Counted from the first letter of the stretch, positions 27,528-55,264 are shown. The stretch: DNA of 64,000 nt from Neoechinorhynchus agilis (GCA_051530055.1 CM121341.1:806001-870000); one strand, 5' to 3'. The notes: generated by a model from the letters alone, not told the origin. Numbers and translations: made by a program.

Positions 27528-29654
27528 TTAGAGGTCGTAAATTACTTCAATATTTGTATTGTACATTTTTATTGTTTGCAAAGATTGATGATCCTTGAAA
27601 GGTTTATTGTGAAATTGGCGTATCGGATTGCTGGAAATATTAAGAATTTTTAGACTTCTGAGATCGGACAAGTGATGGGATGGAAATAGCGAGAATCCAT
27701 TATTTGCCATACGAAGGTAAATGAGTCTATCAAGACCGTAAAATAAGTGAAAAACGTCAATATCTTTCAATTGATTATTGGCAAGGTCCAGCATTCTTAA
27801 CAGGGGAGTATTTCTAAATGCGCGAGGAGCTATTTTCTCAATCCGATTAGACTGTAGACAAAGAAATTCAAGAGTTTTCAAGTCTTCGAAGTCGTCGTAA
27901 TTGATTGCCGATATCTCATTATTACTCAAATCGACTGAGAACGCATTACCACGGATAAAGAGTCGAACATCTTGTATTCGGGTCAGGTTTTTACTAGCAA
28001 GCAAAGTAAAATTTTCTGTATGATTATAGACTGTAATCACATCGTCTACACCAGCAGCTATTTGTATCGGTTCAGGTATATATCTGGCAAGAGTACGTAT
28101 CGAGAAATATGTCTCCGTTCTGTTTCTAGGGTTATCGTATATTAGAACATAAAAAAAGGGATTATTTTTTACCAGACAATAATCGATCGTTTTGGAACCA
28201 AGTCCATGTACATCAATGCCTGTCATAGGGGTGCCTGATACGTCCAAGTACCGTAAATGTTTAACGTTTTTAAAAACACCATCATCGAAAACATAAAAAT
28301 TAGTATTTGCTAATATGAGTTTTTGAAGTAATTCGTTGTTTCGAAAAATTCCCGTCCGAAACGAGGTCAAATCGAAATTTTGTCCGAGATTAAGTACTTC
28401 AAGTTTTTTCAGTGGAAAAAATGCATCCTTGTATATTTGCACGATTCCGTTCGATGACAGGTCCAATTGGGTAACATTTGTCCACGAATCGAAGTAATTA
28501 GAGCGAATTATTCCTATACGATTTCTTTTTAGAATCAACTTTTCCGTCCAATTGTTTCCACGTGGTACTTCTCCAAGATTTGAGCCCATAATCTTCACAA
28601 CTTTGACTTTTGGCATTCTGGCTAGAATTGTTGAATTCAAACTGTGAGCGATTCCACCGTGTACAATAAATTTTTTCAATTTTTCGAATTGAAATTCCTC
28701 TTCAAACAATTTGTTTAAATCTGCTTGGTATGAAAATTCCAAGATTTTAAGTTTCTCTAGTTTTGCTAATTGACTCAAATTGATCTCATTTAAAGGATTA
28801 GCATCGATCCGTATATTTTCCAGTCTTCTAAAATTGAATTCATTGGTTAGCACGAATCGCTCAATTAAATTATCCGACAAGTCTAAAACCTTCAAGCTTT
28901 TCATCTTCTCCACAACATTTAGGCAATCATTACGCAAACCATTGCGTGACAGTTGTAATGATTGAAGATTGTAAAGATCCACTTGCATGTTCAAGCCCAA
29001 TCGCCACAAGCTATTTATACTCAAATCGAGATCGTTCAAATTGTTAAAACCTTCAAACGCGTCATCTTCGATATATCCAAATACTGCGTTTTGGATTTGA
29101 AGTCTTCTACAATGCCAGAATTTATGAATAAGAGATTTCGTAATGGTAATACTCTCATATTTATTTCTCGTACAATATATCGATAAGTCCGCGACGTTTG
29201 GAAGGATGTGATTGTCACTGTTTATAATGTCGTAGAAAAAAGCAAACTTAATTTTGATTCGATTGATTGAACTGTTTATTGCTATCTTGTTCAAGACACT
29301 TGATACTGAGTTGCTGGATCTAATTGTTGAGCTCAAAATGTGCACACCGTCGTATTTTGTGTATTGAAGCGACCATTCATAGCAAAAGTCAAATCCGAGG
29401 GTTAGAACGAGTAAAGCTTTCACGATGGACAAAAATATCATTCCAGTTAAAAGGAAGTACAAGACTTTCTTATGGTTTGCTTTTATATGCAAGGTGGATT
29501 TAAACGTCAAATTTGATGAATCACTTGTCAACGATCCTTGCAACAGTTTGATCCCTTTTACCCGTTTTAGTTCGAGGTTAAAATGCATTACACCATTTCT
29601 TGTTGTACATAAAAATGAATTTAGTTTAGGCTTCGCTTTTGCCAAAGAAGACAT
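27528..29654 (-). CDS. Intronless extracellular leucine-rich-repeat protein (708 aa; Toll/chaoptin-like ectodomain), apparently C-terminally truncated
   Basis: Many LxxLxLxxN repeats (LNDLDLSINSL, LKVLDLSDNLI, LEVLNLGQN, LRMLDLANNQL); hydrophobic signal-like segment near aa 65-90; no LRRCT, TM or TIR before the stop. Confidence 0.9.
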   Translation of the reverse strand: MSSLAKAKPKLNSFLCTTRNGVMHFNLELKRVKGIKLLQGSLTSDSSNLTFKSTLHIKANHKKVLYFLLTGMIFLSIVKALLVLTLGFDFCYEWSLQYTKYDGVHILSSTIRSSNSVSSVLNKIAINSSINRIKIKFAFFYDIINSDNHILPNVADLSIYCTRNKYESITITKSLIHKFWHCRRLQIQNAVFGYIEDDAFEGFNNLNDLDLSINSLWRLGLNMQVDLYNLQSLQLSRNGLRNDCLNVVEKMKSLKVLDLSDNLIERFVLTNEFNFRRLENIRIDANPLNEINLSQLAKLEKLKILEFSYQADLNKLFEEEFQFEKLKKFIVHGGIAHSLNSTILARMPKVKVVKIMGSNLGEVPRGNNWTEKLILKRNRIGIIRSNYFDSWTNVTQLDLSSNGIVQIYKDAFFPLKKLEVLNLGQNFDLTSFRTGIFRNNELLQKLILANTNFYVFDDGVFKNVKHLRYLDVSGTPMTGIDVHGLGSKTIDYCLVKNNPFFYVLIYDNPRNRTETYFSIRTLARYIPEPIQIAAGVDDVITVYNHTENFTLLASKNLTRIQDVRLFIRGNAFSVDLSNNEISAINYDDFEDLKTLEFLCLQSNRIEKIAPRAFRNTPLLRMLDLANNQLKDIDVFHLFYGLDRLIYLRMANNGFSLFPSHHLSDLRSLKILNISSNPIRQFHNKPFKDHQSLQTIKMYNTNIEVIYDL

Positions 29655-30039
29655 TTTATCATCTATTTAGATACCGCGAGCTTTTGTGATTTAGGTCAAC
29701 TACGGTAAACAATGTTGAATATCTTTGGATAAGGCCAAGTGCGATGATCCTTTCATGTTTCTTTGAATTTGAAGAGTGTTGCTTTTTTAAAAAGAACCTA
29801 AAATTTCAAACTTGACTGGAGCTGAAAACTCCAAGGCCAATTTACGTATCTTAAATTTGAAATAAACGGTTTGTGTCAAAAATAATTTTATAGGTCTATG
29901 CAACTCGTATCCGTTCGTCGTTCATCCAATTCGACCCTCGATCGAAGAAGATAGATGATAGCATTTAATGAAACGAACTCCATCTGAATTTCTCTAAATG
30001 CTTCGAAATGATCCTCTCAATCTCCCGCAACCCCACATC

Positions 30040-30560
30040 ATCCCCTGAGCTTCCAAATGACATCCTACGAGTAACCTCCCTAAGAATTATGGGTATCCAA
30101 TTTCAATCAAACCTGAAATGAGACTCGTACATCACTCTCTCCCTCAAGCTAAAATTTATCTCCTCAAACGTCTCCGAGATTTAGGAATCCCTTCACTCGA
30201 TCTCTACAAATTTAACTTCAGTTTTATTTTACCCTCCCTAACCTACGGTTATCCCGTCTTCTGCAACCTATCAAAAAATCAAAGCCGCCGTCTTGAAATG
30301 TTTCATAAAAGGGCATCTTAAATTTGCACAACTGACGTTCCCTCTCTCACCAAATGTCTTGATACTATTTTCATAAAACAAAAAGCCTATCAACTCTACC
30401 TCCACAATCCCTTTTTCACACGACCACAGCACTCGTAATCCCAATTCCTTTCATCTTCTTTCGACCTCGCACCTCCTTATAGCTACGCTCCTTTTCCCAT
30501 GCGGCCCAATCTTCTCGGATATCATTGCCCGAAATTCAATTAACCTAGCAACAAACACTA
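30040..30560 (+). mobile_element. LINE RT C-terminal fragment
   Basis: KIYLLKRLRDLGIPSLDLYKF..SFILPSLTYGYPVF. Confidence 0.7.
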
Positions 30561-50417: not shown

Positions 50418-50783
50418 TTAAATTTCGTATATGTCTACATTATTTCCACAGGAGTCAATTTTTCCTTTTAGTTTTCCCACATTTATTAATTGCACGATCA
50501 AATCCTTTGTAGTTTTGAAAGGCAATTGGAGCAGCTGCGCAGTGTGTCGAATAGAGACATTGTAGCTCAAGTCGAAAAGACGTTCAAGGAAAAGGAATCT
50601 GGCTGCTTCTGTGTATTTCTCCAAATATTTTACCAAATTTTCATCTGATCTTACGAATTGTATTGATTTACATAGATAGTTCGCTGCGTCTTCAAAGTTA
50701 AATCTGACAAATAGGGAAACAAGGAAGTTACTGACTGGATCATCTGATCTAATAAATCTTAGATTGTCAAAAAATTCAGACAT
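50418..50783 (-). CDS. Intronless PCI/winged-helix-only paralog of eIF3e, 121 aa (gene A)
   Basis: DPVSNFLVSLFVRFNFEDA...DENLVKYLEKYTEAARFLFLE...VSI..TAQLLQL...IVQLINVGKLKGKIDS aligns with recalled eIF3e DPITEFVECLYVNFDFDGA...[21 protein letters not shown]...ISINMLADKLNM...IVNLIRNARLDAKIDS. First ATG is at 50783. Confidence 0.8.
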   Translation of the reverse strand: MSEFFDNLRFIRSDDPVSNFLVSLFVRFNFEDAANYLCKSIQFVRSDENLVKYLEKYTEAARFLFLERLFDLSYNVSIRHTAQLLQLPFKTTKDLIVQLINVGKLKGKIDSCGNNVDIYEI

Positions 50784-51251
50784 TGTATTAATCCTTGCAA
50801 TGCTTCGAAACACTTGATAATAGCTAAAATAGCTTTAGAAATGGCCATTTATTGAATCACGATTTTTTCGACAACTTATTCGTATGCTGATATTTAGGAG
50901 AAAAATACTTTTTTATTGATAGGTACCGAGCACAATCATGTGCCCGATTTTCCCACGATATAAATCACAGCTGGACGTAAAAATGCCGAGAAAAATCGTT
51001 TGAAGTATAAAAATCGATTTCGATTCAGTTAGCACGCCTGAGTGAATTCCCTTTGTTCTAATTCCCTTTTTTAATCGAAGTTAGTAAAAAGACGCATGCA
51101 ATTAGCTTCCTGAACGCTGATTGGCTGAAGTGGTTGGACACGTGATAGCACAAGTTTACACTAAAAACGAATCGTTCCTTGAGCAGCATTTTTAACTGCA
51201 ACTCGTTTTCACTTCAACAGCTAACAGTACTTCTCAACAAAACTTGCAAAA
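50784..51251. promoter_or_regulatory. Putative bidirectional promoter between PCI genes A and B1
   Basis: 468 bp between head-to-head ATGs; inverted CCAAT (ATTGG, 51120-51124) and E-box CACGTG (51139-51144), both kept in all three units. Confidence 0.5.
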
Positions 51252-51686
51252 ATGTGTCTCGAATCTGGAATCAATGTGGTAATTCATATTGGTCAAGACT
51301 TTGATGAAATTGAGAAGATGACTAAATTTTATACGTCCAAGACAGGGTTATCCGAATTCGAAGATCCAGCTCATAAGTTCTTACTAGCTATACTCGTCGA
51401 CTTTAATTTTGGAGAAGCTAGCAAAAAAATCAGTGAATCGATCGAAGCAATAAAAGAAGATGAAAATCTGGTAAACAGACTGGACCAATTCATAGAGAAT
51501 GCGCGAAGGGTATTTCTTAACAGATACTTCTTGATATACGCAGTAGTTTTGATTGAAAGTGTAGCAAAAGAACTTCAAATGCCTGTTAAAGAAGTAACGA
51601 TATTGATTGAGGATCTCATGATACAGAACGAATTGCCTGGACAATTCAATGAAGATAAAACCAAAGTGTATACCTACATGAAGTGA
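51252..51686 (+). CDS. eIF3e-PCI-only paralog B1, 144 aa
   Basis: EDPAHKFLLAILVDFNFGEASKKI...DENLVNRLDQFIENARRVF; intronless, intact ORF. Confidence 0.8.
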   Translation: MCLESGINVVIHIGQDFDEIEKMTKFYTSKTGLSEFEDPAHKFLLAILVDFNFGEASKKISESIEAIKEDENLVNRLDQFIENARRVFLNRYFLIYAVVLIESVAKELQMPVKEVTILIEDLMIQNELPGQFNEDKTKVYTYMK

Positions 51687-52522
51687 TTGAATTTCAACGT
51701 GGTTCACAAGTTTTGAAAAGCTGGTGTTTGCTTTAATGTGCTAATAATTTAAAAAAACTAAAATAATTTGTAAAATAAAAAAATGTGTGCTTAATTTCTT
51801 ATTCTATGATTTGGGCATGGTGCTAAAAGGACAAATGAATTTAAAAATAAACGCACAATATTAAGAAATACCTATAATAAACCTTAAAGTATAAAGATGA
51901 CAAAATGCATTGCAGCCTATTAATTTAGTTTTCAAAAAATTTACGGCGTTGTTTTAAACTAAGGATTTTATCCGAAACGTCCTTCAATTCACCTTTTTAG
52001 TCATTACGAAAATGTTCTCTAGGATTATTATGATAAAATAAAATGGAAAGACATTGTATTAATCCTTGCAATGTCTTCGAAACACTTGATAATAGCAAAA
52101 AAGCTTTAGAAATGGCCATTTCTTGAATCACGATTTTTTCGACAACTTATTCGTATGTTGATGTTTAGGAGAAAAATACTTTTTTATTGATAGGTACCGA
52201 GCACAATCATGTGCCCGATTTTCCCACGATATAAATCACAGCTGGACGTAAAAATGCCGAGAAAAATCGTTTGAAGTATAAAAATCGATTTCTATTCAGT
52301 TAGCACGCCTGAGCGAATTCCCTTTGTTCTAATTCCCTTTTTTAATCGAAGTTAGTAAAAAGACGCATGCAATTAGCTTCCTGAACGCTGATTGGCTGAA
52401 GTGGTTGGACACGTGATAGCATAAGTTTACACTAAAAACGAATCGTTCCTTGAGCAGCATTTTGAACTGCAACTCGTTTTCACTTCAACAGCTAACAGTA
52501 CTTCTCAACAAAACTTGCAAAA

Positions 52523-52957
52523 ATGTGTCTCGAATCTGGAATCAATGTGGTAATTGATATTGGTACACACTTTGATGATATTGAGGAGATGACTAAATTT
52601 TATACGTCCAAGAGAGGGTTATTCATATTCAAAGATCCAGTTCATATGTTCTTATTAGCTTTACTCGTCGACTTTAATTTTGGAGAAGCTAGCAAAAAAA
52701 TCAGTGAATCGATCGAAGCAATAAAAGAAGATGAAAATCTGGTAAACAGACTGGACCAATTCATAGAGAATGCGCGAAGGGTATTTCTTAACAGATACTT
52801 CTTGATTTACGAAGTAGTTTTGATTAAAAGTGTAGCAAAAGAACTTCAAATGCCTGTTAAAGAAGTAACGATATTGATTGAGGATCTCATGATACAGAAC
52901 GAATTGCCTGGACAATTCAATGAAGATAAAACCAAAGTGTATACCTACATGAAGTGA
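52523..52957 (+). CDS. eIF3e-PCI-only paralog B2, 144 aa
   Basis: Tandem copy; 14 aa differences from B1. Confidence 0.8.
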   Translation: MCLESGINVVIDIGTHFDDIEEMTKFYTSKRGLFIFKDPVHMFLLALLVDFNFGEASKKISESIEAIKEDENLVNRLDQFIENARRVFLNRYFLIYEVVLIKSVAKELQMPVKEVTILIEDLMIQNELPGQFNEDKTKVYTYMK

Positions 52958-53794
52958 TTGAATTTCAACGTGGTTCACAAGTTTTGAAAAGCTGGTGTTT
53001 GCTTTAATGTGCTAATAATTTAAAAAAACTAATAATTTGTAAAATAAAAAAATGTGTGCTTAATTTCTTATTCTATGATTTGGGCATGGTGCTAAAAGGA
53101 CAAATGAATTTAAAAATAAACGCACAATATTAAGAAATACCTATAATAAACCTTAAAGTATAAAGATGACAAAATGCATTGCAGCCTATTAATTTAGTTT
53201 TTAAAAAATTTACGGCGTTGTTTTAAACTAAGGATTTTATCCGAAACGTCCTTCAATTCACCTTTTTAGTCATTACGAAAATGTTCTCTAGGATTATTAT
53301 GATAAAATAAAATGGAAAGACATTGTATTAAATCCTTGGAGTCTTCGAAACACTTGATAATAGCAAAAAAGCTTTAGAAATGGCCATTTCTTGAATCACG
53401 ATTTTTTCGACAACTTATTCGTATGTTGATGTTTAGGAGAAAAATACTTTTTTTATTGATAGGTACCGAGCACAATCATGTGCCCGATTTTCCCACGATA
53501 TAAATCACAGCTGGACGTAAAAATGCCGAGAAAAATCGTTTGAAGTATAAAAAAATCGATTTCGATTCAGTTAGCACGCCTGAGTGAATTCCCTTTGTTC
53601 TAATTCCGTTTTTTTAATCGAAGTTAGTAAAAAGACGCATGCAATTAGCTTCCTGAACGCTGATTGGCTGAAGTGGTTGGACACGTGATAGCATAAGTTT
53701 ACACTAAAAACGAATCGTTCCTTGAGCAGCATTTTGAACTGCAACTCGTTTTCACTTCAACAGCTAACAGTACTTCTCAACAAAACTTGCAAAA

Positions 53795-54232
53795 ATGTGT
53801 CTCGAATCTGGAATCAATGTGGTAATTCATATTGGTCAAGACTTTGATGAAATTGAGAAGATGACTAAATTTTATACGTCCAAGACAGGGTTATCCGAAT
53901 TCGAAGATCCAGCTCATAAGTTCTTACTAGCTATACTCGTCGACTTTAATTTTGGAGAAGCTAGCAAAAAAATCAGTGAATCGATCGAAGCAATAAAAGA
54001 AGATGAAAATCTGGTAAACAGACTGGACCAATTCATAGAGAATGCGCGAAGGGTATTTCTTAACAGATACTTCTTGATATACGCAGTAGTTTTGATTGAA
54101 AGTGTAGCAAAAGAACTTCAAATGCCTGTTGCAGAAGTAACGATATTGATTGAGGATCTCATGATAAAGGTGAACGAATTGCCTGGACAATTCAATGAAG
54201 ATAAAACCAAAGTGTATACCTACATGAAGTGA
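53795..54232 (+). CDS. eIF3e-PCI-only paralog B3, 145 aa
   Basis: Tandem copy; differs from B1 by K>A, Q>K and an in-frame 3-nt insertion. Confidence 0.8.
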   Translation: MCLESGINVVIHIGQDFDEIEKMTKFYTSKTGLSEFEDPAHKFLLAILVDFNFGEASKKISESIEAIKEDENLVNRLDQFIENARRVFLNRYFLIYAVVLIESVAKELQMPVAEVTILIEDLMIKVNELPGQFNEDKTKVYTYMK

Positions 54233-55264
54233 TTGAATTTCAACGTGGTTCACAAGTTTTGAAAAGCTGGTGTTTGCTTTAATGTGCTAATAATTTAAAA
54301 AAAACTAAAATAATTTGTAAAATAAAAAAATGTGTGCTTAATTTCTTATTCTATGATTTGGGCATGGTGCTAAAAGGACAAATGAATTTAAAAATAAACG
54401 CACAATATTAAGAAATACCTATAATAAACCTTAAAGTATAAAGATGACAAAATGCATTGCAGCCTATTAATTTAGTTTTCAAAAAATTTACGGCGTTGTT
54501 TTAAACTAAGGATTTTATCCGAAACGTCCTTCAATTCACCTTTTTAGTCATTACGAAAATGTTCTCCAGGATTATTATGATAAAATAAAATGGGGAAAGA
54601 AAAATTAATCATTTATGAAAGTGCCAAATCAAAACTCTAAAACAATTTCCATACTTTGAAAATTAAGTTTTAATTTTTTGACATTCGTCAAAATTCCCTT
54701 CAAACCAATAATTCAGGTGTCTTGTATTATTATTTTCGGGGGAAAAGAGATTTTCTTTTAATAGTTTTATCGCACTCCGGATTTAGCGCGGCAAAAGTAC
54801 CAAAATGAATTTATTTAGGGTTTATTTACAAAGCGGAAGTATCTAATACTTTCATCCTTGAGGTCTCAATGGTCAGGATTAATAATATTTGACGAAATTC
54901 GATGGCCGAAGCCATACTTTGACTGAAAAAGGAGAAATAAGAGTTTCGGAAATTACTGAGAAAAATTAGAAAAATCGCGAACCTCAGAACTTTTCTTATT
55001 TTGCGTTCATGAATATCCGCGATGCCTTACTAAATTCTGACAGCAAGTCTAAGACGCAAATAATACTTAAAAATTTTATAGGATAAATGTCTCAAATTTT
55101 TTACACGTGAACGCTTGCGACAAAATCGCAGTTCAAAAATTATAACGTTATTCCACTGTATCAATGCTTTAAAGTCAGCAAAATATTTAATTAGAAAGAA
55201 TTGTCAGGAGGGAATTTTTATATTAAAAGAGTTTGTCTCGACCAAATCTTACTAACATTCACGC

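Follow-up and report, generated by a model that had tools for sequence, protein, structure and literature searches.

Why should a genome keep short genes that encode only one end of a translation initiation factor subunit? The question is raised by a 64,000-nucleotide stretch of DNA from the thorny-headed worm Neoechinorhynchus agilis, an acanthocephalan (here called the window; G000:C1:806001-870000 of a genome of 46.2 Mb in 102 contigs), where positions 50418 to 54600 hold four uninterrupted, intronless open reading frames (ORFs) that resemble only the PCI region of eIF3e. Gene A is on the minus strand (50418-50783) and encodes 121 amino acids from its first ATG at 50783, which matches the length of database model P0004; as listed, its ORF opens at a GTG (50418-50813, minus, 131 amino acids). 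Genes B1 (51252-51686), B2 (52523-52957), and B3 (53795-54232) are on the plus strand and encode 144, 144, and 145 amino acids, the sole indel of B3 being one extra whole codon, in frame. We find that these ORFs belong to a larger family of mini-genes, and that purifying selection maintains the family. We are confident that its members are functional protein genes, and the copies preserved by selection probably make working proteins of unassigned role.

Several comparisons place the mini-genes with eIF3e. Against the Pfam PCI model (PF01399, gathering cut-off 22 bits), A, B1, and B2 score above the cut-off at 33.1, 27.5, and 27.8 bits, B3 falls marginally under it at 21.8 bits, and the copies of a third subfamily, C, found elsewhere in the genome, reach 30-36 bits. 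In phmmer searches of the PDB, each window ORF aligns to eIF3e residues of about 287-390 with E of about 1e-6 (288-386 in the case of gene A). With a profile built from the family, eIF3e is matched at 7e-20; the PCI proteins that rank next are a proteasome lid subunit and CSN2 at 1e-3, with Rpn subunits at 1e-3 or worse. AlphaFold2 models of B1 and A, with predicted local distance difference test (pLDDT) values of 90.9 and 90.7, consist of helical hairpins followed by beta1, two helices, beta2, and beta3, the arrangement of a three-stranded winged helix. When the B1 model was compared with known structures by Foldseek, eIF3e, CSN, and Rpn PCI chains were all among the matches, and the top matches were the eIF3e chains of human 43S complexes (query-normalised template modelling score, TM-score, of 0.80 over 147 columns). 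Among 1.84 billion proteins, the best matches outside the family itself were full-length eIF3e. The preliminary description of the locus, made from the DNA alone, had called the four ORFs eIF3e-derived and PCI-only, and the Pfam, phmmer, profile, and Foldseek results all bear this out.

What the mini-genes retain of eIF3e is the last two helical hairpins and the winged helix; A has only one hairpin and is without the first helix of B and C. The ORFs open at the position of eIF3e residue 265 or thereabouts, and the N-terminal eIF3_N domain (PF09440) is absent from them, its sole match in the genome being the canonical eIF3e gene. Every predicted product is acidic (pI 4.8-6.1). At 61 columns conserved across 81 eIF3e orthologues, the mini-gene products are identical at 22 to 28 and the worm's own canonical eIF3e is identical at 29.

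The four window genes turn out to be one locus of a larger family. A whole-genome search with B1 gave 22 matches, and the third subfamily, C, contributes at least 11 intact copies along with four broken ones (c2p, c4p, and the C10 pair), located at 4.21-4.33 Mb of contig 1 and on the small contigs C52 and C10. The conserved C product is 145 amino acids long from M-T-V-E-Y and is 41-44% identical to B and 37-40% identical to A; the identity of A and B to C is also given as 33-43%. The preliminary description had reported a cluster of four; the cluster is present, but it is a single site of a family that numbers at least 15 intact genes and four decayed ones. Whereas A and the B genes, the older subfamilies, form a diverged head-to-head pair and a tandem array, most C copies stand head-to-head in palindromes that are nearly perfect and span about 1.6 kb. 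The arms, each with promoter, gene, and 3' flank, meet at a centre of some 30 bp, and roughly 345 bp separate the two start codons. These palindromes have been multiplied as segmental duplicates. No mobile-element ends were found around them, and their shared flanks extend variably, without consistent ends. We considered whether the mini-genes might be transposable-element cargo and ruled this out, given the absence of defined ends, the confinement of the copies to three regions plus small contigs, and the position of the window locus among ordinary genes (a glycosyltransferase, Tam41, and a transglutaminase).

Published gene models for this genome come from BRAKER, and such models are no proof of expression; the family members are annotated there only as "hypothetical protein." Several C-family models (G000:C1:4211851-4212762, 4310088-4310999, and 4317829-4318506), among them P0162 (208 amino acids) and P0005 (166 amino acids), carry N-terminal extensions that read through the promoter of the partner gene, or contain an intron that deletes conserved residues, and some of the models are wrong.

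Evidence that these are genes rather than debris comes from their codons. Since synonymous sites are saturated between A and B, pairwise dN/dS was replaced by maximum-likelihood codon models (GY+F3X4), with each fit compared to ω = 1 by 2ΔlnL. For all 15 intact genes ω was 0.27 (2ΔlnL 70.7, p 4e-17), for subfamily C alone it was 0.25 (2ΔlnL 52.4, p 5e-13), and for the A/B1/C triplet, which isolates the deep branches, it was 0.145 (2ΔlnL 34.7, p 4e-9). Pairwise ω within C ranged from 0.10 to 0.34, with 0.49 for one near-identical pair, at dS of up to 0.30. A ratio near 1 between A and B, which the preliminary description had listed among the results that would refute it, was not seen. Three lineages that hold intact frames at saturated synonymous divergence cannot have done so by chance.

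One copy departs from this conservative pattern. Of the 18 differences between B1 and B2, 15 fall in 106 bp of B2 (52556-52661, plus strand), and nearly all of these change an amino acid; the counterpart in the first repeat unit lies at 51285-51390, an offset of 1271, and the flanks on either side are 98-100% identical. B1-B2 dN/dS is about 2, on small counts. Where subfamily C polarises the changes in B2, B1 has the older state. A whole-genome DNA search for a donor of the tract matched only B1, B2, and B3. The tract could reflect positive selection acting locally, gene conversion by a copy that escaped sampling, or decay in its first stages. The relationships among the repeat units are themselves mosaic: over the 5' noncoding stretch unit 1 is the odd one out, over the coding stretch it is B2 that stands apart (18-21 differences, against three between B1 and B3), and unit 3 carries private indels. 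Such a pattern speaks for three genuine copies and against a single sequence that was collapsed or expanded.

The mini-genes also appear to own a promoter. A 19-nucleotide element, CCTGAACGCTGATTGGCTG, lies at 51109-51127 on the plus strand, 124 nucleotides before the B1 ATG, and has a CCAAT core that we take to be of the NF-Y type. The regions upstream of B and C can be aligned only over a 20-nucleotide block, and a search of the 46-Mb genome with the pattern CCTGAACNCTGATTGGCTG, allowing at most one mismatch, returned 16 sites, all of them before mini-genes (3 B and 13 C); the reversed pattern, used as a control, returned none genome-wide. Within the window there were three matches where 0.04 would be expected. 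The distance from element to ATG is 124 nucleotides in B and 80 nucleotides in C, the C copies have in addition a TATA box, TATATAAG, about 55 nucleotides upstream of the ATG, and B and C have the start context caaaaATG in common. That the element has been kept between B and C despite saturated synonymous sites is indirect evidence that the mini-genes are transcribed. The preliminary description had proposed that A and B1 share a head-to-head promoter. The 468-bp divergent spacer and its CCAAT element are there, but the element belongs to B: A has none of its own, and the sole element in the spacer is about 325 nucleotides from the A ATG. To judge by sequence, a shared A/B1 promoter is possible.

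Where did the family come from? A full-length eIF3e, whose presence the preliminary description had asked to have confirmed, exists elsewhere in the genome: a single gene at G000:C1:8704824-8706601 (model P0168, 421 amino acids) whose exon 1 encodes eIF3_N and whose exon 2 encodes the PCI domain, the canonical full length being taken from the database protein and exon 1 being located by reference search. In A, B, and C the similarity to this gene sets in at the first codons of its last exon, to within 0-7 codons depending on the acceptor chosen. They also stop at one alignment column, 12 residues past a G-K/Q-I/F-D/N motif and 4-5 residues past the last predicted strand, where canonical eIF3e runs on for about 45 residues, and no remnant of the lost C-terminal helix was found downstream of the mini-gene stops. 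This common start and stop, held at ω of 0.15-0.27, agree with the earlier claim that the truncation predates the triplication and was kept. Phylogenetically, the mini-genes form one clade (Shimodaira-Hasegawa-like approximate likelihood ratio test, SH-aLRT, 98), and the worm's eIF3e groups with that of Pomphorhynchus laevis (SH-aLRT 94). A free tree did not resolve the mini-genes, which have long branches, among eIF3e sequences. A tree that joins them to the acanthocephalan eIF3e pair was not rejected (approximately unbiased test, p-AU 0.87) and stands 42.6 log-likelihood units above the free-search tree; given the long branches, this result shows compatibility only.

The exon-boundary match, the lost 3' coding end, and the possession of their own promoters point to DNA-level duplication rather than retroposition, and a duplicated last exon of eIF3e is the most likely source of the family. 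In the history we propose, that exon would have been duplicated at the DNA level and would then have acquired its own CCAAT promoter (plus a TATA box in C), with an early stop codon removing the C-terminal bundle helix; inverted, tandem, and segmental duplication would have spread it from there. A processed pseudogene or retrocopy was rejected on the ω values, the dedicated CCAAT and TATA motifs, the 5' end at an exon boundary, and the missing 3' coding end. An upstream in-frame N-x-Y-Q-F in C that resembles the start of the canonical exon was dismissed as chance, since its place is downstream of the TATA box and ahead of the ATG.

The canonical gene has irregularities of its own. Model P0168 splices H-W-A-M to N-L-Y-Q and in doing so omits about 34 residues that align to conserved eIF3e (G000:C1:8705560-8706040), and the frame through these residues stays open as far as R-F-A-P-Y-I. 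The conserved frame cannot be reconciled with any GT-AG pair, and the true intron may therefore be noncanonical. Elsewhere, the 3' part of eIF3c (the end of eIF-3c_N plus PCI) recurs as a 667-bp copy (G000:C3:2186135-2186801) that is 99.85% identical to the canonical eIF3c, 163 kb away. The fragment adjoins a 130-bp satellite that is likewise arrayed downstream of canonical eIF3c, and it seems to stem from very recent duplication of a fragment or from an assembly join rather than to be a maintained mini-gene.

Three explanations would deny some or all of the mini-genes standing as independent genes. That all are dead copies, processed or unprocessed, with frames open by chance is barely credible and largely refuted. 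Some members are plainly broken, B2 has its excess of amino acid changes, and look-ups of the exact products of A, B1, and one C copy returned no RNA or protein evidence, although the canonical eIF3e used as a control was likewise blank, which makes the result uninformative; yet ω = 1 is rejected both across the 15 genes and on the deep branches, 15 intact frames keep a common start and stop across saturated synonymous divergence, the promoter element is conserved, and no trace of the C-terminal helix survives past the stops. It is very improbable that the ORFs are instead terminal exons of larger spliced or trans-spliced transcripts. Such a reading would account for the coincidence of the mini-gene 5' end with that of the canonical last exon and for the N-terminal extensions in P0162 and P0005, but those extended models rely on unconserved sequence running through the partner's promoter, while the ATG sits in the conserved caaaaATG context with CCAAT 80-124 nucleotides and TATA about 55 nucleotides upstream, and a palindrome leaves just 345 bp or so between start codons. 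The last of the three concerns only the B genes, whose triplication could be an assembly artefact in which alleles of pooled worms were placed in tandem. The DNA did come from a pool of about 50 worms and was put together with a hybrid assembler (PMC12690905). We nevertheless consider an artefact improbable: the mosaic of the units (5' flank shared by 2 and 3, coding part by 1 and 3, private indels in 3) is at odds with it, the 3.8-kb array is shorter than the long reads used, which were at least 5 kb (PMC12690905), and tandem and inverted copies are normal elsewhere in the family.

If the mini-genes make proteins, how might those proteins act? The PCI domains of eIF3e and eIF3l are in contact, it is through eIF3e that eIF3k, eIF3l, and eIF3d are anchored on the octamer, and the helical bundle is a keystone of octamer assembly (PMC5159561); in plants, eIF3E without its PCI domain shows weakened eIF3E-eIF3L binding (PMC13043079). 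Genes for eIF3l (G000:C1:14340462-14341598), eIF3c (G000:C3:2020909-2023257), and eIF3d are present in the N. agilis genome. The preliminary description had suggested that the mini-gene products could be decoys, competitors, or adaptors in the assembly of eIF3, CSN, or the proteasome lid. We propose that the free PCI module would bind eIF3l/eIF3k, eIF3c, or another PCI complex at the docking surfaces of eIF3e. It would supply neither the N-terminal arm that holds eIF3d nor the helix by which eIF3e is fixed in the helical bundle, and a winged helix with neither of these might be expected to bind its lateral partners and leave the complex incomplete. The module could then serve as a competitor, buffer, or chaperone in assembly of the right side of eIF3, and it may alter how much eIF3 contains subunits e and d and how much lacks them. 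This mode of action we put forward tentatively, on the strength of what the predicted proteins retain and lack. The whole explanation, which joins working genes, an origin from the last exon, and action through docking surfaces, seems to us credible but somewhat short of an even chance. A more specific version, with dosage-amplified dominant-negative or buffering modules that capture eIF3l/k or eIF3c and so toggle cells between eIF3 that has the e-d arm and eIF3 that lacks it, possibly in a germline conflict, is doubtful; it is the palindromic amplification that makes germline conflict possible there. If true, it would make the family a genetically encoded regulator of eIF3 composition.

Several observations weigh against action on eIF3 or against parts of the proposed history. 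Two motifs conserved in eIF3e are changed in all mini-genes, D-F-F-L having become D-E-N/T-L and the Trp of E-R-W having become Leu, so the surfaces presented to partners may differ. Association with eIF3 may be weak without the bundle helix. The burst of amino acid changes in B2 suits diversification or incipient decay better than a fixed partner, the exon-boundary match leans on an intron whose exact ends are uncertain, and the expression look-ups were blank. The main rival takes up some of these same points and grants that the genes are functional, but gives them a new role outside eIF3, as a scaffold for a new partner, a nucleic-acid binder, or an ampliconic, possibly germline-restricted or selfish family. 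Both the family-wide replacement of the two motifs and the clustered nonsynonymous tract of B2 would suit such a role, as would the growth in copy number through tandem arrays and nearly perfect palindromes, with broken members beside intact ones, and a family known so far from one species. Against it, ω of 0.15-0.27 describes conservative evolution and not an arms race, positions conserved in eIF3e are kept about as often as in the canonical gene, and an acidic pI disfavours nucleic-acid binding in its simple form. We regard a function outside eIF3 as possible, though on the unlikely side.

At the window itself, the preliminary account of four intact intronless ORFs, of A and B1 standing head-to-head 468 bp apart, and of a triplicated promoter and B gene was recovered in full by ORF and repeat analysis. 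The divergent spacer (50784-51251), which holds the candidate promoter or promoters and the one family CCAAT element, also contains an E-box-like CACGTG that can be read straight from the sequence. The three direct-repeat units, all on the plus strand, are each about 1.27 kb, with start-to-start spacing of 1268-1278 bp and 93-100% identity. Unit 1 (50802-52072) comprises promoter, B1, and 3' flank; unit 2 (52073-53340) has its promoter element at 52380-52398 ahead of B2; and unit 3 (53341 to about 54595) has its element at 53652-53670 ahead of B3. The left edge of unit 1 is 19 bp upstream of the A ATG, which puts A outside the repeat.

Other features of the window can be described briefly. Opposite each B gene is an antisense ORF of 105-108 amino acids (51384-51707, 52661-52978, and 53927-54253, minus strand); these match no family, are repeated only through repetition of the unit, and are taken as by-products of the sense frame. 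Farther upstream, 27528-29654 (minus strand) is an unbroken 708-amino-acid leucine-rich-repeat ORF (LRR_8, 154 bits), an unusually long single exon for this window. About 500 bp at 30023-30525 are 71% identical to G000:C1:4331291-4331784, beside one of the C palindromes, and the similarity is probably that of an unrelated dispersed repeat. Scans of 47-58 kb with Rfam and for tandem repeats gave nothing relevant.

A stand-alone eIF3e PCI module family appears to be undescribed and is so far confined to N. agilis. When the family profile was run against 1.84 billion representative proteins, no relative with the mini-gene architecture came up outside this species: only four matches were better than 1e-30, all from N. 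agilis, after which came full-length eIF3e at 1e-17. Short matches in other species were considered as possible relatives, and each one inspected keeps the C-terminal helix, as expected of an ordinary eIF3e fragment. The annotated proteome of P. laevis, in which canonical eIF3e was matched, had no mini-type protein among the matches listed. The text and one supplement of the paper on the N. agilis genome (PMC12690905) make no mention of eIF3 or PCI. Neither protein libraries nor the literature thus supplied a family of this kind, in keeping with the preliminary remark that none was recognised.

The family matters in part because of where it comes from. eIF3e is normally a single-copy housekeeping gene whose product links cap-binding eIF3d and the k/l subunits to eIF3, and N. 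agilis belongs to a lineage of parasites known for heavy gene loss. At least 15 selected genes for docking modules would amount to a natural experiment on how free modules tune PCI complexes or interfere with them. The family also lays out a path from exon to independent gene, through duplication, promoter capture, a new stop codon, and amplification in palindromes.

How do the mini-genes compare with systems already known? Sd-RanGAP and Stellate of Drosophila are truncated duplicates of housekeeping genes that were amplified in palindromes or arrays, and by analogy only they resemble the mini-genes as partial copies of an essential gene that multiplied as inverted or tandem repeats within one lineage. 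In contrast, ω for the mini-genes is well below 1, and germline restriction, drive, and conflict are without evidence here. Small PCI subunits occur naturally: eIF3k, CSN8, and Rpn12 are likewise short proteins built of a few helical hairpins and a winged helix. These, however, are ancient single-copy subunits with fixed positions in their complexes and were not derived from eIF3e, whereas the mini-genes are specifically eIF3e-like by sequence. Canonical eIF3e/INT6 is matched in its PCI region in both sequence and fold, but it has in addition an N-terminal part of about 240 amino acids, made up of eIF3_N (PF09440) together with the helical-repeat arm on which eIF3d is held, and a C-terminal helix of about 45 amino acids that belongs to the helical bundle. 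The mini-genes have neither, and unlike the canonical gene they are multicopy, are intronless, and have their own promoter; identity between them and the worm's own eIF3e is only 19-27%. A further parallel is Int6sh, the C-terminally truncated Int6 that reportedly results from mouse mammary tumor virus (MMTV) insertion and keeps the N-terminal part while losing the PCI domain. Like the mini-gene products as we picture them, it is a truncated form of eIF3e that acts apart from the normal subunit; it represents the opposite half of the protein, however, and is the product of a somatic insertion, whereas the mini-genes are an evolved gene family.

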